Made by a program: the position numbers and the translations under genes
In this document: piece after piece, positions 1,655-56,162 of the stretch
Layout of the letters: every line of letters begins with the position of its first letter
Numbering within the stretch: the first letter of the stretch is position 1
Assembly: GCF_021869535.1 (NCBI RefSeq)
Contig: NW_026262593.1
Coordinates: forward strand, 47,616,001-47,680,000
Reading direction: 5' to 3'
DNA length: 64,000 bases
Origin: Mytilus californianus
Taxonomy: Eukaryota
The notes under the pieces: model-generated
What the model was told of the DNA's origin: nothing
Databases searched by the model: none
The model's input: only the letters and a program-made list of their open reading frames with translations

Positions 1655-1954
1655 GTATACCATATGACATCAAAAAAGAAAGGAAAATTTCTAAGTATTT
1701 CGAATGTTCAGTGTACACAACAGACCACAGAAGAAAAATCACCAGATGATTCCAAGTCCAAAAAGTGCACAGAAGAAAAATCACCAGATGACTCCAATTT
1801 CAAAAAGTGCACAGAAGAAAAATCACCAGATGATTCCAAGTCCAAAAAATGCACATCATGTGTAGACTTTGATAAAACTGCTATATTTCAACTATTCAAG
1901 CATGTACAGTATGAATCACAAAGTACTGATGCACGGAGAGACGTTTCAGGAGAT
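1655..1954 (+). CDS. Paralogue 1 exon A (start of large subunit, beta1 and expanded loop)
   Basis: TTTTAG acceptor ends at 1654 and GTATGT donor starts at 1955; phase 0-0. Encodes VYHMTSKKKGKFLSISNVQC...DFDKTAIFQLFKHVQYE...SGD. Confidence 0.85.
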
Positions 1955-4900
1955 GTATGTTAATGTTAAATATATAGGATCAAAGTTTTTACAACGTAAA
2001 GAACTTAAAGGGTGTCATAAAAATCAGTTCAGTTACATACAAAATAAAAAAAGCCAAGGATTAACACATAAATTGCCTTTCTTTGACTAATTATCTCAGT
2101 GCGGCCTTCAACACAAAACAGGTGGTCCCAACTTTCTGCAAGTTTCCGATGGAATTTGGCACAATTTCAAGCCCAAGATAATAAACGAATAATAAGATAA
2201 CTATAGTTGGTTTCAGGGATCAACACAAGGTCTACATGTCTGTTGGACAGGGTTCACCAGACCTTGGTCTCATTTCATGGAGAAATGATCAATGTTATGT
2301 TTCGGTGGTTAAGCCCGTATATGAAAACCTTTAAGCAGTAGGTCATATTCATCATGTATATTTGGTGTAAGGAATGATTGAAAGATATATATGTCTGTTT
2401 GGCAATGTTCATCTGACCTTTACCTCATTGTCATGATTCATTGGTCAATGTAAAAAATGATTTATGATACTGTTACCAAAGTTGAACTAATTTTGTGAAT
2501 GAATTTATTATAGGGGGTGCACATCTATTTTACATAGTTCATATTACCTCGATCTTATTTTCATGGATTATTTGTAGTAAAACCTTTATTTATAAACATA
2601 AATTCAATCATGACACGATCAGTCAAATATTCAAAACATCTCGTCTCGTGCATCTTGTTTTAATAAAGGACTTCTACTTGCCATGTAACCACTACAATAA
2701 CTAGGAATTAAGTAAAAACGCAATTTCGGGATCAACGTGCTATCTGCATATGAATAGTGAAATGTGAGGTGTGTGTTTGAAGAACAATAAAACAATATGT
2801 AATTGGTTTACTGTGAAACAATGTCAGCACCTGTCTTTTGGTGAATACTGTGTTTCTCTGACTATTAATGAAGCCTTTATACTGAATCCATTTGATGTTG
2901 GACGTGTACTGATTGATATTTTAGGCTTAGATACACCAATTGTGTCAGATAACCAACTATGATAATTCGACTGAGTATGCCATTGGATTTGGTTGGCAGG
3001 TAATGCATACGTATCAGTGGAATTTTACCCTATCAACAACCCGGTTCGCACCTTCGGATTTCATTAGATTCCATCATGTTTTACTTTGATTTGTATATTT
3101 CTTATTGATTACTGAATTTTGAAACATCGGTAAACTACTGTTGCCATTAGTTAAGTCAAGTTCTATTAGCGATAATCATCAGCCATACTCCTGCAGTGGC
3201 TTTTAATGTTTGTCTTGTCGAGAACAAAACCACTCAAAGGAGACTATACATATTTATCAACAGGTTAGCTCCTAACTATCCTACTGCCTGTCGATACGTT
3301 TATTTTGGCATTGCACAAGTCACGTCTTCTTAGACTGTCCATGACGTTAAAACACTAAATCCCTGGGATGTGTTTTAGTTGATTTTAGTCTCTGATGCAT
3401 GATTTTTTTAATTATTAATTGTTTTTGGGTTTTAACTAGCTTTCATTAACTGCGAGTACTCTCAAATCGTACTTTCGTGTTAATTTGATCTGTTGATACA
3501 ATTTATAATGTATTTTTGTTATTCAATGTTTACTTATTCAGTGTTATATCTAGTCTCACTATTTTTAATATATACCACCTTTGATAAGTGTTTAGTATGA
3601 CGATAAATTTTCACTTTTGTTCTCGTACTAGGTACAACAAAATTATTTATTTTGTAAAAATTATTTCCGTACTCCATGTTTACCTTACAAAAAAAATATT
3701 TTTATTTACCTGTGTACGTTATTTTAACATCCAATCCCCTTGTTTTATTAATTCTGTATTTACATTGTGTCATAGATCAAATTTATTCGTTCAGTGTATG
3801 TTCACTTGTTTTTGTTAATATGTCTTTTGATTGAGTTAAGCCATTTCAATTGATATTTAATAGTGTGTCTTTCTATGTTGTGATGTTACACTATTGTTTC
3901 AGGTAGGTTGAATGTTGGCGCCTATTAAAACGTTTAAACCCGCTGCATTTGTTTGCACCTGTCCTAAGTCAGGAATCTGATGTTCAGTAGTTGTCGTTTG
4001 TTGATGTGGTTCATAAATGTTTCTCGTTTCTCGTTTTTTATATGGATTAGACCGTTGGTTTTCCTGTTTGAATGGTTTTACACTAGTCATTTTTGGGGCC
4101 CTTTATAGCTTGCTGTTCGGTGTGAGCCAAGGCTCCGTGTTGAAGGCCGTACTTTTCCTATAATGGTTTACTTTTACAAATTGTGACTTGGATGGAGAGT
4201 TGTCTCATTAGAACTCATACCACATCTTCTTATATATATATATTAAACATGCTGCTTCCTCCTTCTATGGCGTCAACAATTGTTAACGTGTTTTATTAGT
4301 TAGTAAAGGCAAGACACATCTCTGTGTAAACAGTTTATTTGTTATGACCAATCTTTCGTAGAACTCGGTTTGAGTTATCCTTGTGTGATCACGTATTAAC
4401 GTTGTGTTTTTGTTGTCACCTTCGTACGAACAACCGAAAGAAAAAATGCAATTAATTGTCCAATATTTAAAAAAACAACAGAAAAAGGAGAGAAAATCTT
4501 ATTAACAAAAATGCAAGGAATGTGAAATTTAGCTATTTACCGTGTAAACTAAAGCTATTGTTTCTAGATATTCTTTCTTTTCATAACTTGTTTAGATGTA
4601 TGTTTTTCATAATCACGAAACTGAATCTATGAAGACATTTAGTGGTCAATTGTAAAACGTTCTTATATGGTCTTTTTTCTCCCAATATTATTAAACGAGA
4701 TGGCTTCTATTGTACATTAATATCGTAGTGAAAATACATTTTGCTACATTCTTATCTACAAAAAAAACTTCGAAAAAAATATACCTAAATAATTTTCCAA
4801 ATGTTAGACTATGTGTTGATGCAACTTTACATTCAGCAACTCAACCAATATGTCACTTAACCATATTAAACAAAGGGGTTCATGTATATAGTTTTATAAA

Positions 4901-7900
4901 ACAATCGTAGTTTTGGACAAACCAAATATGTAGAAAAATTCATTAAATGTATATTGTAAATCCATCAACAGTGTCAGATATTTGCTTATTTTAGTTATTG
5001 CCTTTTAATGAAAATTTAAAATGAACTTTTAACGGTTTTGGTTATTATCTTAATTATAGAATAACTAATCGAAGAATTCAAATAGAGAAAAATATTCAAC
5101 GAGTGACCGAACAACGCATTAATTCCCGAATGCGCGTAGCGCATGAGTTAATTATCAGTGTTGTTCGGTGACGAGTTGAATATTTTTCGATATTTGAATT
5201 CTTTGATTAGTTATTCTTTTTATTACATTGGCAAATGGCTTTTTTTAATAAAATTAATGTAGAAAATGTAAGGAACTATATCTTTTTTCTACGCATTCAC
5301 AATTTGTTTTGATCCGACGTTATCGACGTCTTGACAACGCCTATTGTTGTGTGACGTCAGAGAGTGAAATAACCACGTTTATTTCACATGTGAAATTATC
5401 GGTTTTTATTTGACTGGGAAATCAATGTAATGCATTGCTACCAATGTAATAAATATCAATAATGGAAATACAATGACTGTTCTTTGCAAAAGTAATAAAC
5501 ATAGCGTCAGTTGTTGTACTTCAAAGGTGATTTTTCACATATTTTTAACAGGATATGAAGAAGTTCCTTGACGAACATTTAAACAACACAGAAAATTCAA
5601 CTTTTGATAGCTTAGTTGTGGTAATCCTCTCTGGAGGCGTTGCATATAAACCAGGTGAAATATATGATAAAGATGGCAAAAAAATCCAAATGGAAGAAAT
5701 ACTTGAAATCTTTCGAAAATCAAAAGCTTTTAAAAACAAACCAAAAATCGTCATCATTAGGACATACAGTTTTGAAGGTATATAAACTAAGCATTTAATT
5801 ATATGGTTTGTAAATGTTATTATTATGTTATTTTATTTATTTTAGTTAAATGCTCAAAGATTTTGTTTCTGAAATTATCTGGAAATCATATCCATGTCAG
5901 TTTTTCACTGCGTTAATTGGCTGATATCAAAGGCGTCAGTTTTCTTGAAATTAGACTAATAATATTATGCTATCATTTATCATTTTAAACTTGACATATT
6001 TGTGATAATTGAACACTTAATAATTCTTAAAATAAATTCTGGATTCGATATTACGCATTTTTAGAAATAGTTTATCTGTTTAGATTTTCGAACCACTAAG
6101 TGTTTGAAGAAATATATTTTTAAGCTAGAAAACGTTGAATCATTTCAGCCGTTGAAAAAACAGGAAGTCCTGATACATTTTTGAACAATTGTATATCATG
6201 TGAATTATATACGTACAAGATTGTTGTAAATTATTTCATATCATTCCATTGTAGGTCAGTTCTACATAATATAATATTTAAAAAGGGATGGAATTAAAGG
6301 ACAATATTTATTATTTTAGATAAACTGTGTGTTTTTTTCATTTTTGTAGAAGAAACAGAAACATCTGATGTCCTAGACGCTGAAAAGGCTGATCTTCCTT
6401 TCTACAAAACAGAACCAAATAAGGATGATCTATTTGTGGTGTCATCTCAACCAAGGACAAGTACGGATTATTTTTGTTATTATATGACTGTAATAGACAG
6501 GATGAATTATCCTGATTTATGGGCTGCAATATTCCCTTTGTACATCCATCTACAGATAGTACAACAAAAATTCTTACAAGCAAATTTGATAAAATTTGAT
6601 AAAATTTGTTAGAATATTTTAATTGGGTGAGAAATTCTCCTCTTCTATTTTTATAATTTATTTCCATTTGCTTTATTCGCGAGATAACGGACTTTTATAT
6701 TTTCTTAGTATAATATATCTTCGATCTTCGATCTTTTGACTTGAAACTTTATATATTTTTGGAATGGTGAATGAAGGCATGAATTTGATTTTTCAAAATG
6801 TTCTAGCTGTCATTGCTGAGCTATACAAATTTAATGGTCAGATTGACGTCAATTTTCCACATGTCGTCCACTAACTCGATTATGCTGAAATCAATTTTCC
6901 TGAAAATGTACACTTTTGTTTAGGATTAGCGGAAGCAACTTATCCATATTATTCCTTGATATTGTACTAAAGCCTATTATATCAGGCATTTGTTTCACAT
7001 GTTAAGCACTCACTGCAGCAAGTATGCTTGGGTCAATGTCCTTTAAACATACCATTATTGTTAAAATTGCTTAAAGTAAGCGTCCTTTGAATTTTAAAAA
7101 TAATTAAGATTTTTGATACTTTTGTTGTTTTGGAAATAATTTAGTTATTTTTATTTCAGAGAAATAAACATTATCATCAAGTTAAAGGCAATTTTTGTAC
7201 GTTTAAGTATAACCTCGTGATTTCTTTTATGCAGGACTGTTTTTCTTACTTTTGATTTTAATGCCTTCTACAAAATTCCATTTTATTAGCGCATTAATTT
7301 TAATATGCATATTTATTATTGTAAAAATATTTCTTTTCTCCTTTTAAACTGTATACCTAACAACAAAATTATTTTCATTTACCTGTGTATAATATTGTGA
7401 ATGGCGGATTTTTGTTCAAGATAATTGTTGTTTTTCTGAAATTGTTTAACATTTCACAGCGGTATAATACTGTTACTTTAATTATTAATCCCTTATTTTA
7501 TTGATTTTGTATTTACATTGTATCATAGATCAAATTTATTCGTTCAGTGTATGTTCACTTGTATTAATATATCTTTTGATTGAGTTAAGCCATTTCAATT
7601 GATATTTTATAGTGTGTCTTTCTATGTTGTGATGTTACACTTTTGTTTCAAATAAGGGTGAAGGTTTGGTACCACTAAAACGTTTAAACCCGCTGCTATT
7701 GTTTGCACCTGTCCTAAGTCAGGAATCTGATGTTCAGTAGTTGTCGTTTGTTGATGTGGTGTATAAGTGTTTCTCGTTTTTCATTTTTTATATAGATTAA
7801 ACCGTTGGTTTCCCCGTTTGAATGGTTTTACACTAGTAATTTTTGGGGCCCTTTATAGCTTGCTGTGCGATGTGAGCCAAGGCTCCGTGTTGAAGACCGT

Positions 7901-10900
7901 ACTTTGACCTATAATGGTTTACTTTTATAAATTGTGACTTCATTGGAGAGTTGTCTCATTGGCACTCATACCACATCTTCTTATATCTATTATCTTTATA
8001 ATTATTACCATTTCACACGTCATGATATGGAAGCAAGCAAAGAAGAGTAAGCGACCTGTTTATCTGTCAAAGAACTTAATTTATTTTGTTACAGATTAAT
8101 GCACCTGATACATAATTGACCATGATTGCCCATCGTAAAAACTTGAATGTAGCTACGTATAATAAAACAGTTAAGCTAGAGGCATTATGTTTACCTATGT
8201 AAGATAACCTGATACCCACCTTTTTTGTATTAAAATCCTTTGACATACGCTAGTGAGTAAGCGTAGGATGTAAAGTACTACTGAGCATAACGACTTCACA
8301 TGTGTGCAGCTGCTTGCCAGTGATTAGTTGTAATGTGTGAAAACTTTTCAGATCTCTCAGACACCTATTCCATTTCTTTCCGTATTATGAATTACGATTG
8401 GAGTATACTCAGCACGACTGTTTGAATCAGCATGAATAGTTTATCTATAAAGTCCAAATACTATTTCTATTATTTAAAATTAAAGTGAATTTAAAATGCT
8501 GTAATCTAGTATCAATTTAGAATAACAACATCAATGTCTATCAAATATAAAATACTGATACATTTGGACTTTATTATTTTTCATTTCAGAAAAAGGACCA
8601 TGGATCATAGGAGACCACATGAATGGATCTTACTTTATACAAGCTTTTATTCATGTCTTCAAGAATATGGCACATGAACAATCATTCATGGACATGATGA
8701 TACAGGTAATGATGCAAACAGTGTTTTGATATACTTAAAAGATTGCACCTCCCCTTTCGGAATTTACATTGGAGTTCGGTATTTTTGTTATACTTTTTCA
8801 TAGTTGTGTACTCAAACCTGACAGTGTATCTTTTTCTGTAGGAAAACTTTGAAGTGCCTAAAATATTTCACATATGAGTTCAACATCTAGCGCATTTTTA
8901 TAACAGTTTGCAGGTCAATACGCTTGGTGATTCTACCCGAAATTGGATCAAACCAAAAATTGTAAATTAATATATCCTGCGTTTCGACTATATATGCAGA
9001 ATTAAGAAGGAATAGCAAAAAATGGTTAAAATAATGTGTCCGGATAAAGGGGCATATTTTCCTGAGCTATTTGCTTCATTGGGAGTTAGCAGGTTGATCA
9101 TGCAGGTTATGGTTTTGGACTAGTGCGTGCAAAACATTCCTACCCTATATCAACACGATATAAACATGATAAACGAAATATTTGCCACTAAGGTTACAAA
9201 CAAAGCTATTAATCCTTCTAACCATGATTGGCGACAAAAGTTGTCTTAAAGGAGCTTTGTGATATTTTAAAGTCGCAGGTAAATTTAAATTTTACTAATT
9301 AAACATTAGACATTTTGTGTGTGACATGTTGCATAGAAACTTGTCTATATTAAATACCTTATTTTGATCTCTTAATGACTAGTTTGTGTGTTGTTAGGTT
9401 GCTTTCACATAAGCATATACCTCATTCTTTTTTATTCATATAAATAAAAAGAAATTATAACAAGAAATGATTGTAACAGGATGCTGTTACGAAGCCTCCC
9501 AAACGAAGCTCCCATAATTCGTCATTCCTATGGTCGCCTGACATTGGGTAAAGTCCAGTACATATTGGTTTGGGCCAGTAAAGTGATATGCATTAGTGAC
9601 GCCTAGGAACTGACCCTGCATGTCATTCAAATCTATGTGAAATGACGAACAGGAATATATATAGTTTAGGGGTGGGCATCTCGACCATTTACAAGATATA
9701 AGAACATTTGGATTGGAGTGACCCCTGGGGACTGACCCTATATATCATTCAAATCTTTGTGACATGACGATCAGGAATATATATGGTTTACGGGTGGGGA
9801 TCTCGACCATTTACAAGATATTAGAACATTTGGGGTTGGGAGAACCCCTGGGGACTGACCCTATATATTATTCAAATCTTCGGAACATGACATACAGAAA
9901 TATATATGGTTTAGGGGTGGGGATCTCAACCATTGTCCAAGATATTATAACATTCTGGGTGGGGGGAAACCCTTGGGGACCTTTCCTATATATCATTCAA
10001 ATCTTCATGACATGACAAACAAGTATATATATGGTTTAGGGGTGGGGATCTCGACCATTAACAAGATATTTGAACATATTCACAGACTGGGGGTGGGGAT
10101 GACCCCTTGGGTCTTACCATGTTTATCATTTAAATCATCTTGGCATGACAAACCAGCATATATAAAGTTTAGGGGTAGGGATCCTGACCACTTACAAGAT
10201 ATTAGAACTTTTTTAAATGGCAGGGGGTCGGGACGACCCCTGGGGACTAACCCTGTTTATCATTCAAATCTTCTCGGCCTGACAAACCAGAATATATATG
10301 GTTTAGGGGTGGGGATCTTGACCACTTACAAAATATGAGAATTTTCTCAAATGCAGGGGTTGGGGATAACCCCTGGGGATTAACCCTGTATTTCATTTGA
10401 TGTGCTTATTATGACAAACCAAAATATATATGGTTTAGGGGTGGGGATCTTGACCACTTCCAAGATATTAAAACTTTCTCTAATGGCAGGGGGTCGGGTA
10501 GACCCCTGGGGACTAACCCTGTTTATCATTCAAATCTTCTCGGCATGACAAACCAGAATATATATGGTTTAGGGGTGGGGATCTTGACCACTTACAAGAT
10601 ATTAGAACTTTCTCAAATGTCAGGGGGTTGGGACGACCCCTGGGGACTAACCCTGTCTATCATTCAAATCATCTCGACATGACACACCAGAATATATGTG
10701 GTTTAGGGGTGGGGATCTTGACCACTTCCAAGATATTAGAACTTTCTCAAATGGCAGGGGGTGGGGATGACCCCTGGGGACTAACCCTGTTTATCATTCA
10801 AATCATCTCGGCATGACAAACCAGAATATATATGGTTTAGGGGTGGGGATCTTGACCACTTCCAAGATATTAGAACTTTCTCAAATGGCAGGGGGTTGGG

Positions 10901-15045: not shown

Positions 15046-15149
15046 TTCCTCCTTGGCCAGACTTGGTAACCGTTAGAAATACAGTGCGGAAGCAAGATAT
15101 CAAACTGAGCTCATTGGATTTCTATAACAAAATATCAAAAGAAAGAAAG
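15046..15149 (+). CDS. Paralogue 2 upstream exon (segment preceding large subunit)
   Basis: AAG|GTATTT phase-0 donor at 15150 joins in frame to 16143. VPPWPDLVTVRNTVRKQDIKLSSLDFYNKISKERK resembles the caspase-2 pre-p20 segment (VKPCTPEFYQTH). The 5' boundary is uncertain: acceptor at 15045 or ATG at 15027. Confidence 0.6.
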
Positions 15150-18100
15150 GTATTTATTACCAGAATATTTAGTTATAAGCTTACTATACTCAACTAATCA
15201 ATACAAGGAATTTCCATCAGTGTTATCTGTCCATTATTTGTAAATTTCTGTTTATCATGAACAACGGAACAAAAGTGAACATAGTATGCCTATATCGTTT
15301 TTTTTTTCTTTTGAATCCAGTGCTTCTTCATATCAACCAATACCACTAATTGTTTGAAAAGATCGTACGAGGAATTATTTTATTTTAAATGTTGATTTAT
15401 TTTATGAACCTTCTGTACTAATAAATGGTCAACTGTTAAGGACAGACATTGTCAAGATTTTAAACTCACATGGCCTATGCCATCGAATGGTGTTTGTTGG
15501 TCATTATTGTCCTTTCTTTAAGTAGCATTTACATTTTGTTCTCTACTTAAGCCCTTCTTTACTGAATGAAATCAAACTTGATACAAATGCGTCTTGCCGG
15601 GTGTTTTTCGAGGGTTGCTGCATTGCTGTCTTGGCATGTAACAGCTTCTGATTATTTGGAAATTTAAACTTCAACTGGAGAAACAACTAGATTCAAAATT
15701 GTCAGAAATGTTCAATTAAACGTTTTTGGAATGACTACTGATGCTAGATGGGGGTTAATTTTTATCGTATTAGGAAATCATATTGGATCTCACTTGGAAG
15801 AACAAATTAAACTGAAACCAAAATAAGCAATAATAATCTTTACAAAAACATTAATCAAATAAAGAAAACCAATGACCACATCATACTCATCATTGGACTG
15901 GTTTTAAATACAATAACAAAATTGTAACAAATAAGCTTTCAGCAGATATAACTGTTTTTACTCTAAGCATAAAGAAGTCATGAAATCAAATAATACAGGA
16001 ATGTTTTGTAGAAGGTACTTAATATTATATGTTGCTTTAGTTCTGATAAACTGCTTCTTGCCAAATTGAGGAGTCATTTCAGCCACGATTTGTAGAAAAA
16101 AGTATATTAAAAATATCTTTATATTTTTAATTTTCTTTTAAGATTTACCCATTGACAAACGGCTACAAAAGAGGGAAGTGTATTTTGATATCGAATGTTC
16201 ATTGCCAGAACAAAGACGACGGGAAGAAAACACAAAGGCATTCGGAGTGTTCGAGTAAATTGGACTTTGATTTAACCAACATAGGTCAGCTATTGAAATT
16301 CATTGGTTATGATTTCGACCAGATTAAGAATTTCACAAATGAGGTATTGTATCAATTACATGTATTTTCGTCGACCTAAAAACTAAATCTTTGATACGAT
16401 TAATTTTTTTAAAGTATTGTTAACAATCAAAATATAGTTATAATACCCCTGCTTTTTGAGGGTGCCGTATAGTAGGGTGCCCAATGTCCAAAAAGTCCTC
16501 TAGTTAACGAGTTTAAGTTAACGGATAACATACGGCTAATTTTTTTTTGCAAATTATAGGAAAATCAGTATATTTTACAATTATGATTGTCGTCGTAAGT
16601 TCCCATGGTCACAATTTTCTAATTTTCGTGTTTTTACAGGGTAACCCCAGATACAGTATTGTACGTGGAATCTTTAACATGAAAAATAAAATTATTACGC
16701 TCCTTGTTGGCGGTTTAAATAGTACTTATAATATAGTTTATATCTTAAATATATCATATAACCAAAAGCGGAAAGTATTTAAGTGATTTTAGTATAATTA
16801 TTTCAGCATTTTAGTAAGACTAACATTTTACCCGAAATTTACCACATTTTCATCGAAAGCAAAATTATAACGTGTATCATCACGATATTTTTTACTCTGA
16901 TTAAAGCAATAAGACACGGTGCATGTGTGTGCCAAATTTCATGTGTGAAATGAAAGTAGTTTTGAAGAAATTAGCAATTAAAAACACAAATTAAGTCAAC
17001 ATTTTGACATTGATTGAACATGGATTATCCCGTGACATTCATCATTTTGTTGCTTACACTATTAGGTCATTAACAAGGACAGTGGTCACTCAATACATTT
17101 CTCATTTTGCTTGTTGTGTGTTGTTTTGAATAGCCAGCTAACTTTGTAAATTGTTATTTTCTTCTGAGGAATATGTTTTGTGTCTGTTTTTCAATACTTT
17201 AAACTTTTTATTGAATAGATATTTTTGTTATAATTGTAGTATAAGCATCAAATCGGTCAGTTTCGTTTCACACCCGGAATATGGCACATCAAGCCTATTT
17301 ATGGTCTTGCATGATGTTTTCAACCTAAATCCCCCTCAGTGTGAACGACAACAAAAATGTATCACCGTTCGTGCTTTAAATTATACACCAGCAAACACAA
17401 CTGAAATAATTTCAAAGCTGAATTGGCAATAGGTTTGTCCCAGCAAACCACTGAGCATGCTGAAGCCAATGACCTATATGTGCGAAGCTGACAGCAGGAA
17501 ATTTTTTTTCCGGTTTGACCTTTTTTTTTCATTTGTTGCTACGCATGCTTATTTTTTTCCGCGGCTTTGCTGCGCGAAAATTTATTTTCACTTTTGTACA
17601 CATTTATATCCTCAACTTTCCTGTATTTCATGTTGCAGAGTATTCATTTTCATCCGGTCTTGTGCAAAGTTATTTATTTTCAGTTCATACCAGGCCAAAT
17701 TATTGATTTTCAAAATCCTCCTCCCTTCCCTCCTTTCGAAATCAAATGGTTGTCCCCTTACTGAAAGCTAATGAAAGGACGTCATCAATTAATAGTCTGA
17801 GAAGAGTATGATCATAAACATAATTACCGTAAAAACTAGGATTCTACTGGTACAGCATGTTTTACTAACTGACTGAATTATGTCGAAATTCTTAGAGAAA
17901 AGGATTATACATTCTTTATATGCCTGTCCCATGTCACGATCGAGCCGGTATTTGAGTGGTTTTCGTTGGTTCATGTCTGATTTCTTTGGGTAAATTGTTT
18001 CGTTATTAATTAGGCCGTTGGTTTTCTCAAATGAATTGTTTCAATTTTTTATACCCGGGCCTTTTATAGCCGACCATACGGTATGTGTTTTTTCTCATTG

Positions 18101-21100: not shown

Positions 21101-24100
21101 TGTGTACAAATTGATTGTAAGAGGTTCGCCTGATAGTGTTTATCTTACTTTGATGTGTTTTGATCGATATTATTTTTTTGTTTTATTAAATCAGTTTTGA
21201 TGATCCCCTAATTAATATGTCATCTATATTCCGTGTATACAAGGAATATGAAGTGTTCATGTTCATATGATAAGGTTATTCAGTGATTATTTTTTTTATT
21301 TTTATTATATTATTCATGTCAGTTTCTCAGAGATGGAATTTAACCTAGCTATTACAAGACATTCAAATTCGAACAGCTTCCAAATTCCATCCTGCAAAAC
21401 ACAGTACAGAAAAGAATCCTATTTTCCAAGAACTATTACCGACTGGAACAAACTACCGGACAACATTGTAAATTGCACTTCAGTAGATTCTTTCAAATCA
21501 TCAATTTCAAAGCATCAATATTAACTCAACTATTACATTATACTTAATTATACAAAGCATTTTTTTTATTTTTTCGTATTTATTAAAGATTGTATATATA
21601 TCAATCTATGTCTTGTTGTAAGTTTCCTCCTGTGACATGATCTTCAATTTGTTGAAGGCGGTCACTATATGGTAGAAGTAGAAGTAGAAGTATATAGGCT
21701 GAAATAATGGTTGAAAATGGAACGTATTTGTCTGATTGGGTTTATCTTATGTTGACCTCAATGTTACAGTTAATTGTTTTATTGATTAGCTAAAAGTTTC
21801 ATGTTAAAGTCAGTATAATAAGAAATAGGATCATCAAATTTGGTTTATCGAATGTAAGTAGTACAATTTTGCCTGACGAAGTTTATCTTAACTAATTTCA
21901 CTTTGAATTTCATGGTTCATTTGATAATTGTAATTATTTTGTGATAATTTATTTCCTTAATCGTTGTGAAAAGTAGTTTAACTGTTTTTTGTTAAAACAT
22001 GCTGTGAGCGGTTTATTTCCCATTTTGACCTATAAGATTTGACCTTTAAATGCTCAATTTGTCGAGATAAAGTTTCATGGTAAGGTACGTTTCTAGGATA
22101 CCACAACAAATAGATCATACAATTTTGAAATATTTTATAAGCCATAGAATGTATTTCTTGCATATAATAAGCGTAAGGTGTACATGTTCAACATACTTTC
22201 AACACAATAGTAAAGCAGGGAAGACACTTCAACATGTCCACTCTTGATTAGAATGTTTTCGGATATAAAATAGAATAACCCATTATCCTCTATATTCTGT
22301 AAAGACGACATTTCATATCATGGATGTGTTGTTGATCTATGTTCCAGTATATAGAGATTGACGGATTATGATTTTACATCCAGCATGAATGTCAGTGTCA
22401 TGATTGCCGTAGATAATGTACTGTACATTTCGATTTTTTAGCGTGTATTTATTATTGTCGTTTTTGAAGAATGAATATATATACATATTTAAATATTGTT
22501 TGTTTTCAGTAAATGTAATATGCTCTTCAACTTCGTACTTTATTTGGCCTTTTTAACGTTTTTGTTCGAGCGTCCCCTGGTGAGTCTTTTGTAGACCAAA
22601 CCGCGCGTCTGGCGTACAAAATTTCAATCCTGGTATCTATGATGAGTTTATTTGAATATAAATAATGAAATATATAAGAATGACACATATATAACATTTT
22701 GGTTGCTGACAATACAAAGTAATAAAATCATGCAGAACATTTTATGAAGAACTATGTTATCCAAATGTTTGGCACTGCTAAAATAAAACATTATGCGAGT
22801 AACTTTTTAAAGTTTTGTTGATGATATCAGTCATCATATTACACTTGTAGATTCCACTGTTATCCACAATAGAGAAACTAGCATAAATGCATGCAAAACG
22901 CAGGTGTAAGCCGTGATGTATCATATATGATGTGTTATCAGATTTCTGAATTGACTGGCTATTGGAAAATGAATCCTATGACTAGAGAAATTGGCCTTAA
23001 CGTTTTTCTGATCGTGTCAATGTTGAAATGTCTGAAACTTTCGAGGATTTTACTTATATTGCAAATATCGCCTTTGCGTTTATTTCAGTAATGTTTACAC
23101 ATATCACATGTAATCAATCCATTAATATTATGGCACTCATCAGGCAAATCGATATTTAGTAGATGTACACTTAAAGTTTTAATATTGCTTATGGAAATTC
23201 AGTTTATAGCCGCGACAAACATAAACTGACATCTTGCAAAATGACGAACCTAACTGAATGTGCAGCTGTGGGTATGATTTAAATATCGCCTTTAGTTATG
23301 CTCACATATTTCATATGAAATCAATCTACTACTGTTTATTCATTTTGGAAACAAATCATTGGTTATTAGTTGCACACTATAAAATAACAATCACTAAATG
23401 AAATTTAAAATTAGAATTCATTATTATTTTTGGAGTACTTGTATTAATAAATCTTCTGGGTATAAATAAACAGCAAATATGAACGTTCCACGAAAACACA
23501 TTTCATGTTAATCTCAATATAGAAGGGTTTAACTTTGTTCATCAAGTATCCACAAAAATTACTTGTTTCCCCTTTATATTGGATATTTGGTTACCCTGAA
23601 GAGGAAAAAATGAATTCATACTCGTATGTTCTCCACTATTCATGTTGTTTTTCGTAAATATTATCTATTGCTATTTTGATCGTAGAGAACATATTTATTA
23701 TGAATGCTGTAGTGTGCTATTTGAACAATACCATGTGTGCAACAATGTAGCATTTTAGGTTTACATATATGTTTGTAAGGAAACATTTCATTCAAATAAA
23801 ACAAATCAATAATAATAACAATTTTTAAGATATTTTTGTTGCAGAAGATTAAAGAGTTCTTGAAAGGAAAATTAGATGAGATAGACAAAAATCAGTCTTC
23901 CAAGTATGACAGTCTATGTATAATGGTTTTATCTGGGAAATTTGACTGTGAAGCTGGAGTAATTTATGATTGCAATGGGAAAGCTGTTCAAAGAAATGCA
24001 ATTTTAGAAATCATTAGAGGCTGTCATCATTTTGAAGGGAAACCGAAAATAGTTTTTGTCCAAACCTACAATTTTCAAGGTATTTATTTTTTGAAATTGT

Positions 24101-27100
24101 TGTACTTGACAACTTAAGGAATGAATAACGACTTAGAAACAAACTAAAGAATATTGGAAATAGCTAATGTTCAATTTTTCTTTTCGATAACCATTTGATA
24201 TTTTGAGGAGTAAAAATGTTATTATACCGGTAAATGGTTTATGTCTCGAAACTGTTTAAATGTATGTGATAGACATCCAAACTGACAATTAACTGAATTA
24301 ATTGATAAATGAAAACAACTTCAATTTTAAATGATAAGCAGTCAATCCAATTGTTTTTGTAGATGAAAAAAACCAAGGCAACAAGGATTTCTCTAAATGA
24401 AAAGTTCAAAATATGAACATTATTTGATGTATTAAATACACCAACAATCTTGCCAACAAAGCTTAGTTCACTGTTTAAACTCAAAGTTGTCAGAGCTTAA
24501 GCTGTATCTATGGAATCCCTAACCCTATTCAGTGACTAAAGGAGTTTTGAAAGGAATAGACATGTTTGACCTATATTGGTTTACTTTTATAAATTTTGAC
24601 TTGGATGGAGAGTTGTCTCATTGGCACTCATACCACATCTTCATATAACTATGTGTTGAAGTGTAAAGTATGTTTTTGTTATGGTATAGCTACTATAGTT
24701 ACAAGTGTTTTCCCTGACCGAAACTATCACACAAATCCTTATAATGGTTATACCCTTGAATGACAATGTTTGACTAATTTATCATTTCTATTATTTTAGC
24801 GTGCAAACTATAAAGGAAAAAAGAAATAAAAAACTGGTCAACAATACAAAATATAGAAATATTATATTACTGAAGCCAGCAATTGACTCTTAATATGAGT
24901 CTTTGAATGACTCAAACCCTCAATCGACCGCATAGGAATTATTTGCCAAAACTTATTTTTTTCTGCATTCTGCAATTTTAAGTAATTGCACTACATAATA
25001 TACCAAGAGTTAGATTATGACTGAAGCCATGAATTTACTCCTTATAGGACTAATTGACCAAAAAGACTCTTTTTTCCAATAGTGGCGCTTCAACCAATCA
25101 AAAATAAATAATTCCATAAAAAAACTATTACTTGATTGAAAGGAGAGAGTTCGACCTACACAGTTTCCATTCCATACAAATATATTATTGCATCGTTTCA
25201 ATTTTATGCAAAAGGCCTGAAATTTTGTTTAGTGGGTTGTTAAAAGTAATATGTATCTTGTAATATGTAAGGGCTTTTCAAACTACCGTACACTATCGCC
25301 CATCGTCTTTCAGATATTTCAAATTAGTGGTTAACACGACAACCATGGAATTTATTGTTTTGTTGTTTAAAAGCTGTCTCATTGAAATATACTCAAAAAT
25401 ATTTTTCTTGAAATAAACATGACAAATTATATACACTATACATGAATGTTTTAGTTATATATTAAATTGAAATAGAAAGGGTTTATATGGTATCCTGATT
25501 TAAAAGTCTGTATATCGTATGCATGTATTCATAAGCGATTATATTTGATTTCAGAGAAAAGCAAAGGTTTTGATTCGTCGGATTCTAAATATGACATAAT
25601 AAAGAATGGTAAATCTAACACAGATGATGTATTTGTCGTGTCAAATTATCCAAGAATAGGTAATTCTGTTTTTTATTTTTTTTTTTGCTTGCATTCCATT
25701 TAGGACAAAACGTTATAGATTATTCTTTTTGGACAGAACGTTATAGCAATCATTTCATCACTGATTAGAACATGTAGAAATTAAGTCAAATGAAGAAATC
25801 AGATGTCTATTTTAACTGGTTTATGTTTTGATTCACCGTTAGATCACAACTGCGCAAACATATAATATTATTCGAGTGAGTTTCAAATAAATATATGCAA
25901 ACCCCAATATCACATAGTGATAAAAAAAATCCGGCTTTTTTTAGTACATATTTGTTATTCGATATTTTGTAATAATTAGTACGGATGTTTCAATTGTCGT
26001 AACCACAATCCCGTCGTTTTTTCCTCGAATGTGACCTACCAAATTACACTTATCATCAGGTTTGTACTTGTATGAGCAACACTACGGGTGACATATGTGG
26101 AGTAGGATCTGTTTACCCTTGTGGAGCACCTGAGATCATTCCCGGTGTTTGATGGGGTTTGTGTTGTTCAGTCTTTATTTTTATCTTGTGTTTTTGTTGA
26201 CTGTTTTGTTTTGTTTTTCCATGGCATTGTCAGTTCGTTTTCGACTTGTGACTTTTTCTATCCCTTCTTATCGTCCACCTTTCTTTGATATTCCATATCT
26301 TGTATTCTAGTCATTTTCTGTAAATTTTCTGTTGATAAATTTTTAATTATCGAAAATACTAAGGGTTTTTCTACCTCCAGGCATGTATGGCCTATTCCGT
26401 ATTTGGCAAAACTTTTCTGAATTTTTGGTTTACAACTTTGTATTGATTATGGCCTTCCAACCGTTTTGATTCGAGACACTGATAAGCTTTACTTAGACGA
26501 AAAGCACGTCTGGATTTTGGATGAGTTTTTAGTATCACTCAATTTGATGCCAATGTTGATGGAAGTTTCGGCTCCGAGGGTATCACCAATATAGTAGTCA
26601 GAATCTCTGTGTTGACATGAAATATCAATGATTAGGTCATGTTCTGTAAATTCTCTGTTGATAATTTTCAGTTATCGACAATCCTCACGTTTTCTACACC
26701 CAGACATGGATGGTCTTACCCGTTATTGTCACAACTTTTCGGAATAATTGGTACAACATGCTCTTCAAATTCATATATGTTTGGGCCTTTCTAATGATTT
26801 GAGCGCCCCTGATAAGACGAAATGTGCGTCTGACGTTATAAGTTTTTTGGTCTTTTTTTCTTTTTGAGCCTTGGTGTTGTCAGTTTATTTTCGACTTATG
26901 ATTTTGAATGTCCCTTTCGTATCTTTCACCTCTCTTGTATAAGCCTGTTTTGTTTTTTGTATACCTAATTTTCATAGTGCATTGATTTATAGTACTCTTT
27001 GCGATTATGGTATGCCCTTTTAAAATAAACTATACAAATAGTCGATTATTTTGGGTGCTGAATTCATCTAATATAATTGCTTAATACTAAGTCTGAGTTC

Positions 27101-30100
27101 TAATAAAAAATGGGATGTCACATCCTATTTTTTACGGCGATGTTGTTATAAAGCCCGTAAATTTGGATACGATCCATGTTAACTGAACAAACTCATTCAT
27201 AAAAGTTATAAATTTAACACAGTAGTAAAATTTTTAGATATTGTTTTCATTTGTACTAATTTTGATTTTTTTTTTTTTTTTTAATTAAAACATAACTATA
27301 TATATATTGCTATATACATGTATGTACAAAGTTGAGAACTCATTATCCTACATCATGTCGATATTGTTTGCTCATAATTTGGAATTGCACTAGGTCAATG
27401 ACGTCTTTATACTAAATCCGTTGGATGTGTACTGAATGATTTAGTCTGGGAGAACATGATTTATTTCTTAGTTGTTATTGTCTTTAAACTAGCTTTCAGT
27501 AACTGCGAGTACTCTTACTTTACTGTATGAGTATTTCTCATTTTACGGTTGCCTATGTTTGCTTATGTCCACATTTTTGGAACACTCGTGGATAGTTGTC
27601 TCATTGGCAATCATACCACATCTGTTTATTTTTATACACATGTTCCGGACCATATGAGTATTTGGTCTTATGGTCGGGGTAATTAACACGTTTACTTTTA
27701 ATACTTGACCCTTCTAGTTGTCACGTCATTAAAAAGAAGCTATCAAAGGCCATTTTATTTTACGTGTAATTATTATAATTATTACAAGATTAATTAAATA
27801 AAAAGAATCAGTTTAACCCAGTTAATTTTACTCACTAGTCAAAACTATAGTAAACACATTTCATACCTATGGTCATTACCGATTTGTCATTACGAATGAA
27901 TGGCAATATGTCGACTTGGGAAGATAACTTTCAAAAATATCTTTATGAACTGTTAAACAAGAAGTCAACTATTTTACTAACTGATGAAACAGTCTACAGG
28001 ATAAAGAGTCTATTAATTGACACTAGAGAAGGACAGAAAACAGATACACCCAGATTAGGATGTGCAAATGCAGAAAAGCTATGGTACCGTGTGGAAGTGA
28101 ATGTCACCCTAAGCATGCATGCAAACATAAAATTAGTGATGGAAACTAACTGTGGCATTAATATTTAACGTTTATGTAGCCCTTGGATGATAAAATAATA
28201 CATGTTCATGTTACCATCATTGTTTTGCTTTTTTAAAGTAAAGTTTATTGTATTATCGAAACGTTTCTAATGAATATTTGAAAAATATTTATATAGTCCA
28301 AATACTCATATGGTCCGGCCATTTAATAACCAAACGAGTACATACTCATATGGTCCGGAACATACACAATACAAATTAAAAAAATACTAGTATGCATTTA
28401 GCGTTATGTGAAAGAAAATAAACCCATCATCTTAATATCTCATCCCGGCACTACGACACTAGAAAAAGTGTCATTCCTTCATCATAAGGGATTCTGAGAA
28501 AAAATTGTTTACTTGATTTATCAATGACCACAGTTAGGTGTTCACTACAATGTATGTCACAAATTTGATATTTTAATATCTCTCAAATCTGGTGGCATCG
28601 CCGACTTCAAAACGAGAAATATTGAATCAAAGTTTAATCTCGTACTCTTACCTGATGGTTTATCATGTAGGGGATAGTTAACTTCGTTTACTGTACGGAT
28701 CCAAAAATAAGACATAAGTTTTGTTTATGGTATGACACATCAGATTTGCAAAGATTTAAGCCTCATGAAAATAAAACCTTAAGTTTTCCTAATTCTGTTT
28801 GAGTAATTTTCTTTAACTAATGCGAATGCCTCAAACCTAACCGATTAAACGTGTTTACCTTTTACGATCAATAACAACGGTTTCATAATATGACATATTA
28901 CTTTGCAAAAAAAATTAAAAAAAAAAGATAATGTTTTCAGAACAAGGTCCATGGATACTTGGCGAAAACATGAGTGGATCATACTTCATTCAGGCACTTA
29001 TCCATGTCTTCAAGAACTTTGCATGTGAAAAGTCATTTATGGAATTATTAAAAGAGGTAAAGTATTAAATAAATACATGCTACGAATATGTAAAAAGAAT
29101 TAAGACATATTAGGTTTGTGATTATATTAGCTTTAATAATTGTTTTGCCATGCCAGTATGAGGGTTTCATGGAGTTGCCTGCGAAGTGTTTCATATCAAT
29201 TACCTGTATTGTTGGAGCAAGCATGCTTGAATTGTTAAAAAAAAGATGTAAAAGACACACAAAAAAGACAAAAGTTTTAAAATAAGCGATATCATTTTGT
29301 AATGATGGTAGGTTGTCTTCATTTGAAATAACACCTACCTCTCTTTGATGGTAACAAGAACAAGGTCAAACTGTGTCTTTTTCCCTTAATGTGGGACATT
29401 ATACCAAACTCTCATTCTAAGAACTATTTAATACATATAAGAGATGATCTGCATTATTACGTATCAAAACCACTTGTTGAGGTAGAGTTCAAGTTACTCC
29501 TAATGAATAATGATAAATATGTAATGCCAATGTTATTGTTAACTACATAAACAAGTATCTTGTTTCTGCTTTTGAATAGTATATTTTTTTCTCATTATAC
29601 TCAGTCCTTGAAATGTTACTCATCACCAGTCACAGCTGTTAGATATATTTTGTGTAATCCTAATTGAGATAAATACTTAAGTGTTTAACAACAATGTGTC
29701 TCAAATAAGTAATATCAGTTTTGTTATAGTATCTATAACAGGAAATATTTACAGATATCAATTTATACATACATTTTAAAATAAAGATACAAGACAAATC
29801 TTCAACAAAAGTGTTGGACAAAATTAAAGTTAATGATTGATTGATGTTTGCTTACCGTCAAGTGGCCAATATTTCATGCATATTCAGGACGAGAACAAAT
29901 AAACAATACAAACAATACTAGTGAATAGGTCCTGTCATAGAGCTGTCAGGGTTGAAGGTCGAGGAAATTTGGATTGCCAACTGGAAATTGAGGTAAATTG
30001 GATAGGGACAGAAATGTAGGCCTGTAACAGGTCACATCCGAACTCCACCTCATCTCCCTCAAGAGTTGTTGCAAGAATTTTAAAAGTGCAGAGAGCGTGG

Positions 30101-31023
30101 CACTGTCTCTACAGGATGCATCGAATTGAACGTCCGCATTTTGACTGGGCATGGCTGCGTACTTTTCATCATACACAGCCAAACATTTGCCCCACTTTAG
30201 CAAGGGTTTTATTGCCGGTCGGAAGATGACCAAAGTGGCTATATTTCTACTCAACGGTCACCCTTAGGAACTCAAGTTAATTAATTGATTCACGAAATTC
30301 AATATGGTAAAAGTAAGTGTAAGTTAAATTACATTTAGGATAAGATAACACATATATTTCTCTCGGTACATCAGATAACTGAATAAGTCTAATATACTAA
30401 TTTTCATACGGATGATTGACTGTAAACCAAATTTTTTGCGATCGCTTTATTTTCGCGGGTATATAATAACGCGAATTTAAATCGTGGCGAATATGTAAAA
30501 CTAGGATCGTCCCTTATCTAAATACATCAAGTAAATTTGAAAATCGCGAAATTAAATCGCCGTGAAGTGGTATAGAAAGGGCTAAACGCGAAATAAAGTT
30601 TGTTTAATGTATATAGATATCAGATTTATCAAGCATGATTTCCTGTACATAAAACATTTGCTGATGAAAAATCTAAGATCAAAGATGCACTTGATACTCT
30701 TAGGGCTGAAGCTGAGACAGATGTATGAATTTATGAGTTTAGATGTTCCTTTTTTCATTCGAAGGTATTAACTTTACAATTGACCTTTACAGGCAAACAT
30801 GTGTCTGGCCCATGCTGTAGTACCAAAGCAGACAACAGAGGGGAATAAAAAAGTGACAATAGAGAGGAAAACTGTTGCACAAATTGTCCTTTTGGAATAT
30901 TGTGAGGGAGCACAGCTTTACTTTTTCCCAGGACTTGATGTAACACCTATTCAAAAAGGCTTGGAAAATAAAGATGTATCTGAATCAGGAAAACCAGTGC
31001 GTGCAGAATCAAACCCTCAGTAG
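15046..31023 (+). CDS. Caspase-2-like pseudo-caspase, paralogue 2: join(15046..15149,16143..16343,23845..24079,25555..25659,28941..29056,30793..31023); start codon uncertain
   Basis: Six GT-AG exons form one open frame with the same intron phases as paralogue 1. Landmarks: LDFYNK..IYPLTNGYKRGKCILISNVH, DSLCIMVLSGK, GKPKIVFVQTYNF, DDVFVVS, GSYFIQAL and LYFFPG. Catalytic His and Cys are absent. Confidence 0.85.
16143..16343 (+). CDS. Paralogue 2 exon A
   Basis: TTTTCTTTTAAG acceptor and GAG|GTATTG donor; phase 0-0. Encodes IYPLTNGYKRGKCILISNVHC...DFDLTNIGQLLKFIGYDFDQIKNFTNE. Confidence 0.88.
17918..18809 (+). repeat. Near-perfect 446-bp tandem duplication built from two opposed repeat fragments
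   Basis: Units 17918-18363 and 18364-18809; I found one substitution (GTTATTAAT vs GTTATAAAT). Confidence 0.93.
18815..19275 (+). mobile_element. HINE/pearl-like element remnant
   Basis: Two CATGAAA(A)TGAGGTC units, a GCCGCCGCC short repeat and a terminal TCGCA...TGCGA stem. Confidence 0.5.
21345..21692 (+). mobile_element. 5'-truncated CR1/L2-group LINE 3' end
   Basis: ORF 21267-21524 ends ...RKESYFPRTITDWNKLPDNIV, the typical SFFPRTIxxWNxLP C-terminus of these RTs; the 3' tail is a (GTAGAA)n repeat at ~21672-21691. Confidence 0.8.
22500..22655 (+). repeat. Dispersed repeat family C
   Basis: GCTCTTCAACTTCGTACTTT...GAGCGTC..(C/G)GTGAGTCTTTTGTAGAC motif; decayed copies at ~26300-26840, ~36160-36365, ~36620-36835 and ~43960-44045. 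Confidence 0.7.
23845..24079 (+). CDS. Paralogue 2 exon B (degenerate catalytic region)
   Basis: TTTTTGTTGCAG acceptor and GTATTT donor; phase 0-1. Encodes ...YDSLCIMVLSGKFDCEAGVIYDCNG...GKPKIVFVQTYNFQ. Confidence 0.9.
25555..25659 (+). CDS. Paralogue 2 exon C (linker and start of small subunit)
   Basis: TTTCAG acceptor and GTAATT donor; phase 1-1. Encodes EKSKGFDSSDSKYDIIKNGKSNTDDVFVVSNYPRI. Confidence 0.82.
25985..26290 (+). repeat. Dispersed SINE-like repeat family D
   Basis: Core AAC(A)C..CGGGTG...GGA(G/A)CACCTGAG is shared with ~60045-60290. Confidence 0.6.
27641..28362 (+). mobile_element. 722-bp TIR element with TG...CA termini and an internal transposase-like ORF remnant
   Basis: Perfect 20-bp TIR TGTTCCGGACCATATGAGTA (27641-27660 / 28343-28362), with TACACA on both flanks (27635-27640, 28363-28368). 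Contains ORF 27869-28168. Confidence 0.8.
28941..29056 (+). CDS. Paralogue 2 exon D
   Basis: TTTTCAG acceptor and GAG|GTAAAG donor; 116 nt like its paralogue. Encodes EQGPWILGENMSGSYFIQALIHVFKNFACEKSFMELLKE. Confidence 0.9.
29835..30268 (-). mobile_element. SINE-like dispersed repeat family E
   Basis: (CAAT)n-type tail on the minus strand; a colinear decayed copy lies at 38265-38660. Confidence 0.6.
30793..31023 (+). CDS. Paralogue 2 exon E (LYFFPG, stop)
   Basis: CCTTTACAG acceptor, phase 0. Encodes ANMCLAHAVV...RKTVAQIVLLEYCEGAQLYFFPG...NPQ, with TAG at 31021-31023. Confidence 0.85.
   Translation, partial: ANMCLAHAVVPKQTTEGNKKVTIERKTVAQIVLLEYCEGAQLYFFPGLDVTPIQKGLENKDVSESGKPVRAESNPQ

Positions 31024-56096: not shown

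Positions 56097-56162
<66 letters not shown>

Follow-up and report, generated by a model that had tools for sequence, protein, structure and literature searches.

The window analysed here is a stretch of 64,000 nucleotides from Mytilus californianus. It carries two caspase-domain units on the + strand, each made from five exons (A to E) and 36% identical to the other. AG/GT borders are present at all ten unit exons, the intron phases run 0, 1, 1, 0 in unit 1 and again in unit 2, and both reading frames are open, as an earlier note on this DNA had described. The units are also as well diverged as was then thought, with 24 of 38 residues identical in exon D by count from the translations (earlier given as 24 of 39). 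However, they are not the tandem pair of genes that the note took them for. The eleven exons at 1655-31023 are the final ones of a single gene, and the units are its two halves:

1655..1954, + strand: exon A1 of unit 1 (AG/GT borders, phase 0/0; tblastn to homologues), with the Y-x-M motif, beta-1 ("LSISNVQC"), the L1-loop region and alpha-1
1726..1855, + strand: minisatellite in exon A1 (TRF: 42-nt unit, in frame, 3.1 copies)
5552..5777, + strand: exon B1, p20-like core (Pfam PF00656, E=2.9e-7; alignments)
6350..6460, + strand: exon C1, intersubunit linker, containing D-V-L-D/A (6367-6381)
8590..8705, + strand: exon D1, p10-like start (Pfam; G-P-W-I-I-G...G-S-Y-F-I-Q)
13064..13193, + strand: exon E1 in its long-transcript form, ending at an internal phase-1 donor (GT at 13194-13195)
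13194..13240, + strand: E1 read-through tail with TAA at 13238-13240 (ORF), predicted end of a unit-1-only short product
15046..15149, + strand: linker exon of 104 nt (V-P-P-W-P-D-L..., phase 1/0)
16143..16343, + strand: exon A2 of unit 2, reached by a spliced contig
23845..24079, + strand: exon B2 (Pfam PF00656; alignments)
25555..25659, + strand: exon C2, intersubunit linker, containing F-D-S-S-D/S
28941..29056, + strand: exon D2 (Pfam; G-P-W-I-L-G...G-S-Y-F-I-Q)
30793..31023, + strand: exon E2 with the stop at 31021-31023, which closes the 624-codon frame

In the long isoform, the frame is open over all 624 codons and 20 of 20 splice sites are canonical. In paralogues, the exon ahead of unit 1 is homologous to the linker exon. 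Neither the linker exon nor exon A2 contains an ATG, there is no Met from the E1 junction to the middle of exon B2, and unit 2 lacks its own start codon. Comparison with homologues revealed neither a CARD exon nor any other first exon in the interval separating the units, and no CARD exon was found within the window. The minisatellite in exon A1 codes for a charged 14-residue repeat at the place of the caspase L1 loop, and the M. coruscus orthologue has one repeat unit fewer.

Splicing joins the two units, and expression of the gene is low. Direct read placement covered the junction between the units, and the in-frame joint 13193>15046 (GT..AG) is found in raw RNA reads of run X10 and in contigs of runs X2 and X3, in total two raw reads and two low-depth contigs. 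This supplies the spliced expression that had been proposed as a check. The X2 contig (417 nt) covers E1, the linker exon, A2 and further, and the X3 contig (522 nt) begins in exon A2 and extends past it. Among the words of 23500-29400, 5-8% occur in the suspected RNA runs, close to the exonic fraction of that stretch, and collinear mRNA homologues agree with the exon order. This word share, the 522-nt contig and the homologues indirectly support the B-C-D splice joints in both units.

Neither unit retains the catalytic residues of a caspase. In unit 1, the His site is GGA (Gly, 5633-5635, in L-S-G-G) and the Cys site is TAC (Tyr, 5765-5767, in R-T-Y-S-F), while unit 2 has GGG (Gly, 23935-23937, in L-S-G-K) and TAC (Tyr, 24067-24069, in Q-T-Y-N-F), exactly as first read. 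In a profile alignment to caspase-3, the Gly is paired with the His in its SHG motif, and the Tyr with the Cys in QACRG. The SHG...QACxG dyad of active caspases is thus absent from the window units (SGG/RTYSF and SGK/QTYNF), and the same holds throughout the family, where units 1 and 2 have SG.. and ..TY.. with few exceptions (Ala/Ser, one H-T-C). The pocket for the P1 Asp (Arg179, Gln283 and Arg341 in caspase-1 numbering) is not preserved either. The Arg179-equivalent position in exon A1 has no Arg, and the Arg341 equivalent is gone, S-W-R having become P-W-I in unit 1 and P-W-I-L in unit 2 (in the alignments, P-W-I or P-W-L). The pocket Gln is present only in unit 2 (Q-T-Y), with Arg at that position in unit 1. 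Without the His, the Cys and the two Arg residues that bind P1, neither unit can be an aspartate-directed cysteine protease. The loss of the two Arg equivalents and the joined transcript are two points absent from the earlier note.

The caspase fold is nevertheless retained in both units. The Peptidase_C14 search that had been suggested matches exons B1, D1, B2 and D2 (PF00656), and two such stretches are found in each of the relatives P0074, P0076 and P0101. An AF2 model, made for the paralogue P0076 rather than for the window protein, has a pLDDT of 70-90 in both domain cores, and Foldseek places CED-3 (TM 0.75), caspase-3, -8, -9 and -1 at the top, with CED-3 first and TM values of ~0.65-0.79. 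For the two-domain region, the pTM is 0.48 and the arrangement of the domains is without confidence. The original label "caspase-2-like" holds only loosely: among caspases, the best solved match of exon B is caspase-2 (E=7e-5, PDB search), but the best match of the family CARD is the CARD of caspase-9 (E=0.0016) and that of the fold is CED-3. Caspase-3 comes first in the PDB profile search because the subunits of caspase-2 have entries of their own, and this ranking therefore leaves the subfamily undecided. Pentatricopeptide-repeat entries that ranked above caspase-2 with exon B alone were discarded as spurious. In a published tree, most bivalve CARD-caspases form a branch of their own. The family prodomain is a CARD (PF00619) and no DED match was found, so the protein does not belong to the cFLIP family.

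Annotated relatives and unlabelled mRNA contigs encode the same series of CARD, unit 1, linker and unit 2. Proteins with a CARD and two Peptidase_C14 stretches are found in M. coruscus, M. californianus, M. galloprovincialis, M. edulis and M. trossulus, and the family has so far been found only in Mytilus and in the unlabelled transcript contigs. The relatives include transcripts from Logan or ENA (L001, encoding P0076, and P0014, P0101, P0103 and P0104); the intron-less mRNA contigs L001 and L007 each hold the whole protein in a single ORF. All full-length paralogues have the CARD, and at the orthologous locus of M. coruscus, the gene model lying upstream contains a CARD and stops ~9 nt beyond exon A1. 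In M. californianus, P0074 comes from a locus that has no overlap with the window. Genome annotations break up or mis-frame the family genes (P0011, P0002 and a 266-aa CARD model), which affects counts of mussel caspase genes.

In a tree with the seven His-bearing caspases of the same search, five of which have an intact Q-A-C-x-G motif, the family is monophyletic (100/100), with separate clades for unit 1 (100/100) and unit 2 (99/100). The domain duplication and the dyad loss are older than at least five paralogue lineages. The radiation of the family was preceded by the duplication of a six-exon block, consisting of the linker and exons A-E, within a CARD-caspase that was already dead. The replacements are common to units 1 and 2 of the family, which bears out the original proposal that both are pseudo-caspases whose dyad was lost before an old duplication. 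The family is conserved across Mytilus species and transcribed, with a rapid turnover of genes.

The best explanation overall, with a probability of roughly 0.6, is a single CARD-type gene with two dead caspase domains that acts as a non-catalytic regulator. The CARD and tandem-unit architecture and the dead status of the domains can be held with high confidence. From the N-terminus, the protein would consist of a CARD prodomain, a WPD linker, pseudo-caspase unit 1, a second WPD linker and pseudo-caspase unit 2, and the CARD exons of the window gene would lie upstream of the window. The function as a regulator or decoy is put forward tentatively, by analogy, at somewhat less than even odds; a FLIP-like regulator recruited through its CARD would be plausible. 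The CARD would bring the protein to the platform that activates live CARD-caspases, where the dead domains would pair with, or replace, live caspase domains, and activation would be blocked or tuned. The D-x-L-D/A motif in the unit 1 linker (exon C1) is invariant across 14 two-domain homologues, which suggests that live caspases may still cleave there.

Alternatively, the window paralogue might be drifting towards a pseudogene, intact by luck in a birth-and-death family and with no function of its own. The reference orthologue of M. coruscus has a stop in exon A2 (TCG>TAA, 16243-16244), a 1-nt deletion (frameshift) and a GT>GC change in exon D1 and a lost B1 acceptor (AG>AA). Compared with this orthologue, the window paralogue has an omega of 0.51, not significantly different from 1 (p=0.057), and its low expression would also fit. 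However, the TAA of the M. coruscus assembly is TCA (Ser) in a transcript of another sample, and the window itself does not look like a decayed pseudogene, with frame and splice sites intact and correctly spliced RNA present. Divergence from M. coruscus is 4.4% in non-exonic DNA and 0.031 in dS, similar to the dS of 0.05 between M. coruscus and M. californianus, and in this comparison, the exons are strongly depleted in indels (2 observed against 13.9 expected from non-exonic DNA, p=1e-4) and in substitutions (about half the non-exonic level, p=2e-7). Drift of this paralogue is an unlikely explanation.

The family as a whole is under purifying selection, with an omega of 0.34 for unit 1 and 0.29 for unit 2 at dS 0.23 (p=2e-7) and of 0.375 against a paralogue. 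The earlier claim that the frames have been kept since the duplication thus holds at the family level. The dN/dS check gave ~0.3 for the family and 0.51 for the window paralogue, which evolves faster and whose M. coruscus orthologue has the lesions described above.

It has also to be considered that the dead domains might serve as fast-evolving bait for pathogen inhibitors or proteases that target caspases, and not as a brake on host caspases; the CARD would then signal the hit. There are many paralogues, the number of units varies (P0095 is a three-unit isoform), and the loop at the L1 position is hypervariable and prone to repeats. In the sister-species pair P0001/P0074, the CARD has an omega of 0.09 and the dead domains have one of 0.84 (Fisher p=0.007), and the caspase-like part is therefore weakly constrained, or diversifying, over short times; however, the raised omega comes from 44 substitutions that may be polymorphism, and at dS 0.23 it falls to ~0.3. 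There is also no known pathogen partner, and this explanation is distinctly improbable.

That the locus holds two separate tandem genes, each encoding one single-domain pseudo-caspase, is less probable still. If E1 is read through its internal donor, it meets the stop at 13238-13240, so that a unit-1-only product is possible. There is some RNA depth just beyond 13240, and relatives with a CARD and a single unit are known (P0008, P0014 and P0104, the last with unit 1 only and from another species). However, the spliced joint from E1 through the linker exon to A2 in three runs, the lack of an ATG or first exon for unit 2 and the single ORF in all close two-unit homologues, mRNA contigs included, argue for one gene. 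A live protease with other catalytic residues is hardly credible: one P0095 domain has a Cys at the old Cys position (H-T-C) and several near-invariant Cys residues occur at other positions in the family alignment, but no invariant His is found anywhere across 26 aligned units. The old His position is Gly, apart from two sequences with Ala or Ser, and the two Arg residues for P1 binding are gone.

For the non-catalytic regulator, the tandem arrangement allows a further, improbable elaboration. The two dead domains of one chain might pack as the halves of a caspase dimer, so that a single chain would make up a pre-assembled pseudo-dimer tethered by a CARD; this could cap or seed CARD-caspase filaments or act as pathogen bait. 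The bait version would be fast-evolving and aimed at factors that target caspase dimers. We know of no description of caspase regulation by a single-chain pseudo-dimer.

The family represents an independently evolved, CARD-based group of pseudo-caspases with two dead domains per chain. If it truly regulates CARD-caspase activation, it would contribute to an understanding of how the very large caspase repertoires of bivalves are kept in check and would be a natural test of what the caspase fold does without catalysis.

To our knowledge, pseudo-caspases are rare, and cFLIP-L alone is well understood. In cFLIP-L, a Tyr stands in place of the catalytic Cys and the His is lost. The mussel protein likewise keeps the caspase fold with Cys changed to Tyr and the His lost, retains a death-fold prodomain for recruitment and an Asp-containing motif in the intersubunit linker, and may be made in short and long forms. 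The long form of CFLAR, cFLIP-L is a vertebrate pseudo-caspase (reviewed in PMC7586951). Its origin is caspase-8/10 and it combines two DEDs with a single dead domain, whereas the mussel protein has a CARD and two tandem dead domains and derives independently from bivalve CARD-caspases.

The earlier note knew of no description of such genes. However, a 2024 survey of M. coruscus lists caspase-2/9 genes with a dead dyad (His>Gly and a mutated Cys), some with two CASc domains (PMC10967218). Three of these, LG13.t1414, t1415 and t1418, are clustered on one linkage group, and the first two were scored with two CASc domains. They have a CARD, His>Gly and a mutated Cys like the window family, and very probably belong to it. 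The survey gives the change as Cys to Thr, whereas the present alignment gives Tyr, one position on. Most domains in the survey were scored as "p10 only", and the conclusion stops at "unusual functions". Expression of family members is documented for M. coruscus, where copper raises LG13.t1414 from 13.6 to 76.8 FPKM (Table S4 of the survey). The family has been listed there, and no functional study of it is known.

Other decoys resemble the mussel protein in part. CARD-only decoys and caspase-12 regulate caspase-1 in mammals. There, too, a CARD from a caspase duplicate is a proposed competitor at the activation platform, but the caspase domain is absent or weakly active, whereas the mussel protein conserves two full dead domains. 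Among invertebrates, C. elegans CSP-2 and CSP-3, the latter without a large subunit, and Aedes CASPS18 are decoy caspases; we know of none with a CARD and two tandem dead domains. Lepidopteran caspase-like decoys belong to the same group (PMC3141678). Like these proteins, which modulate live paralogues, the mussel family consists of lineage-specific paralogues without catalytic residues. Its proposed role would resemble that of cFLIP-L on caspase-8 and of CARD-only proteins and caspase-12 on caspase-1.

The two caspase-like units of the window belong to one gene, which has lost its catalytic residues, is transcribed across both units and is part of a family held under long-term constraint. The earlier note had described a tandem pair of genes, a view overturned by spliced RNA that runs from exon E1 through a linker exon into exon A2, by a single open frame and by homologues that carry both units in one chain. 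The exons of the two units, all with AG/GT borders, are as follows:

1655-1954, + strand, exon A1 (unit 1)
5552-5777, + strand, exon B1 (unit 1), Peptidase_C14
6350-6460, + strand, exon C1 (unit 1)
8590-8705, + strand, exon D1 (unit 1), Peptidase_C14
13064-13240, + strand, exon E1 (unit 1), including read-through past an internal donor
16143-16343, + strand, exon A2 (unit 2)
23845-24079, + strand, exon B2 (unit 2), Peptidase_C14
25555-25659, + strand, exon C2 (unit 2)
28941-29056, + strand, exon D2 (unit 2), Peptidase_C14
30793-31023, + strand, exon E2 (unit 2)

The internal donor of exon E1 (13193|GT) is in phase 1, and the frame that leaves it passes through the linker exon into A2 and on to a stop codon at 31021-31023, making 624 open codons counted from A1. 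The linker exon and exon A2 lack Met, and neither a CARD nor any other first exon was found between the units. When RNA data were compared over 12500-17000, the joint 13193>15046 (GT..AG) was seen, at low RNA depth, in two raw read pairs of RNA-seq run X10, oriented as expected for plus-strand RNA, and in one contig each from runs X2 and X3. The X2 contig (417 nt) leads from E1 through the linker into A2 and beyond 16343; an X3 contig of 522 nt, which matches the window exactly, begins in A2 and extends about 400 nt beyond that exon. A profile built from both B exons retrieved homologues that include proteins of 631-844 aa, P0070 (631 aa) being a partial record, in which an N-terminal CARD is followed by units of both kinds in a single chain. 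In these proteins, the units are joined by a short exon starting V-P-x-x-x-x-W-P-D, of which 15046-15149 is the window counterpart, and the intron-less mRNA contigs L001 (3346 nt) and L007 (2812 nt), from other samples, each carry the complete series CARD, unit 1, linker, unit 2 as a single ORF. Skipping of the internal donor would bring a stop at 13238-13240, so that a short form with unit 1 only is possible; one relative, P0104, consists of a CARD and unit 1 only. An AATAAA hexamer immediately 3' of the donor (13196-13201) could support such a transcript. Weak plus-strand RNA depth goes on to about 13700.

Both units have open frames and the same intron phases (0,1,1,0), as the earlier note had read them, and in each, exons B and D have Pfam matches to Peptidase_C14; the units are 36% identical to each other. 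The substitutions proposed there also hold: the catalytic His of S-H-G is Gly (GGA, 5633-5635; GGG, 23935-23937), and the Cys of Q-A-C-x-G is Tyr (TAC, 5765-5767 and 24067-24069). A profile alignment to caspase-3 placed no Arg at the Arg179-equivalent position of either unit and put Ile or Leu at the Arg of S-W-R, so that the loss goes beyond the dyad to everything needed for catalysis and P1 binding.

No CARD exon was found in the window, where only 1654 nt precede exon A1. In the collinear M. coruscus locus (L002; GCA_011752425.2, CACVKT020007413.1:258734-295402), the next gene model upstream encodes a CARD protein of 266 aa; its last exon is exon A1, and it terminates about 9 nt beyond that exon at a stop within the intron. 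Given this model, a CARD is most likely part of the window gene, sited just outside the window. The L002 annotation divides the gene between this CARD protein and a mis-framed “p10” protein of 265 aa (P0011). Another family member, P0001, lies on the same strand about 28 kb farther upstream in M. coruscus.

Named members come from M. coruscus, M. californianus, M. galloprovincialis, M. edulis and M. trossulus and are annotated as “caspase-2-like”, “CASP2” or “uncharacterized”. The family is narrow, since among 1.84 billion representative proteins searched, only 16 clusters reached E<1e-11, followed by ordinary caspases; the six longest of the 16 were inspected and all belong to the family, the other ten being short fragments. 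In a maximum-likelihood tree that combined 34 units with seven caspases of the same search that retain His (five of them also with an intact Q-A-C-x-G), the family is monophyletic (support 100/100). All unit 1 domains of Mytilus fall in one clade (100/100), which the unit 1 of a divergent transcript, P0101, joins at 96/89, and all its unit 2 domains fall in a second (99/100). The same paralogue lineages, with orthologues in several species, recur in both clades, so duplication of the six-exon block predates both the separation of at least five paralogue lineages and that of the Mytilus species. Both clades have Gly and Tyr in the dyad positions, and the dyad was therefore lost prior to the duplication, as had been suspected; across 26 units, S94, G95 and T138 are nearly invariant and Y139 is invariant. 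P0008, P0066 and P0067, which have only one unit behind the CARD, have probably lost unit 1 secondarily, since they nest within the unit 2 clade. P0095 (M. galloprovincialis, isoform X3) has three units behind one CARD, the first with Cys back at its old position (H-T-C) and Gly still in place of His. The window paralogue is distinct, with at most 65% identity to other unit 1s and 63% to other unit 2s, except for the mis-framed P0011, which is 95% identical to it.

The dead domains have been kept by purifying selection over the long term, which refutes drifting pseudogenes for the family and agrees with the earlier claim that the frames were kept after duplication. Between the orthologues P0068 (M. 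coruscus) and P0096 (M. trossulus), at dS 0.23, dN/dS (omega) comes to 0.15 for the CARD, 0.34 for unit 1 and 0.29 for unit 2, with an excess of synonymous changes in the units (p=2e-7); between the window gene and its paralogue L001, omega is 0.375 (dS 0.72, dN 0.27). Short times are looser. For P0001 and P0074 (M. coruscus/M. californianus, dS 0.05), the units have omega 0.84, against 0.09 for the CARD (Fisher p=0.007), as would be expected if fast-evolving dead domains acted as bait rather than as a brake, which is a main risk to the mechanism proposed below.

The other main risk is that the window paralogue is losing function. The M. coruscus reference copy is damaged, with TCG>TAA in exon A2 (window-equivalent 16243-16244), a 1-nt deletion in exon D1 together with GT>GC at its donor (8676-8707) and AG>AA at the B1 acceptor (5551), which lowers confidence that this paralogue is indispensable. 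Compared with this orthologue, the window gene has an omega of 0.51 (dS 0.031, dN 0.016; p=0.057). Against decay, the same comparison shows exons depleted in both substitutions and indels: exon substitution density is half that of flanking non-exonic DNA (p=2e-7), and two exon indels are observed where 13.9 are expected (p=1e-4). Since a transcript contig from a different sample has TCA (Ser) at the TAA site, the lesions may represent an allele or a recent event, and the damage fits a birth-and-death family.

An AlphaFold2 model of paralogue P0076, covering its two units and built from a 14-sequence alignment, has two caspase-like alpha/beta cores at pLDDT 70-90 with poorly defined loops and, at pTM 0.48, no fixed placement of the domains relative to each other. 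Foldseek ranked CED-3 first (TM 0.75-0.79), followed by caspase-3, -8, -9 and -1. The label “caspase-2-like” fits only loosely: exon B1 is nearest by sequence to caspase-2 among solved caspases, and the CARD to that of caspase-9; the class is assignable no further than a CARD-caspase of the 2/9/CED-3 type. High conservation within the family marks the beta-6 strand, the dimer interface of caspases, and the L3 segment G-P-W-..-G-S-Y-F-I-Q. The unit 1 intersubunit linker has D-x-L-D-A without variation in 14 two-unit proteins, unit 2 usually has D-x-x-D-S, and W-P-D-[LV] stands ahead of every unit. As W-P-D-[LVF], the last opens the exon preceding each unit (15052-15060 in the window; also before unit 1 in paralogues), and may be a processing site between modules, since the third residue before its Asp is Asp or Glu in many paralogues, resembling a caspase site. 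At the L1 position the family has a hypervariable, repeat-prone loop. Exon A1 has a 42-nt in-frame minisatellite there (1726-1855, 3.1 copies, one more than M. coruscus), which encodes a charged repeat of 14 residues flanked by two conserved Cys; the paralogues P0097 and P0098 have much longer, unrelated repeats in this position.

Elsewhere in the window, the D1-E1 intron holds a satellite array (9602-11066, about nine copies, a 134-nt unit nested in a ~400-nt period) and a (GAA)14 run (11346-11387), and the A2-B2 intron a 446-nt segment in tandem duplicate (17918-18810, 99% identity). Just downstream of the gene is a non-LTR retrotransposon remnant (31295-33700, +) with a reverse-transcriptase ORF (RVT_1, E=4e-33), and a multi-exon acetyl-CoA hydrolase/transferase gene occupies ~44600-58000 (-), with Pfam matches to its N-terminal (54030-54311) and C-terminal (44639-44890) domains.

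The earlier note knew of no description of such a regulator in an invertebrate; the two-unit family is very probably already listed in the literature, though not interpreted. A survey of M. coruscus caspases gives three caspase-2/9 genes with His replaced by Gly and a mutated Cys, and four caspases with two CASc domains (PMC10967218). It reports the Cys change as Thr, whereas our alignment puts Tyr there. Its Table S1 records dyad mutations in the caspase-2/9 genes LG13.t1414-1/-2, LG13.t1415-1/-2 and LG13.t1418, and in Table S4, LG13.t1414 is expressed at all stages and rises from 13.6 to 76.8 FPKM in copper-treated gill, while LG13.t1415 and LG13.t1418 are low (PMC10967218). Bivalve caspases without His or Cys were also noted by Vogeler et al. 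(PMC7836458). Neither paper treats the dead-dyad genes as a conserved family or tests their function, and our literature search found no paper using “pseudo-caspase” terms for this mussel CARD/two-unit family and none in which proteins carrying two dead caspase domains in tandem are described as a family.

In the mechanism that we propose, the strongly constrained CARD would bring the protein to a CARD platform, where the dead domains would pair with the domains of live CARD-caspases or take their place. The invariant Asp motifs would be cleavage sites at which live caspases process the protein. In this, the mussel protein would resemble cFLIP-L, which is processed by caspase-8.
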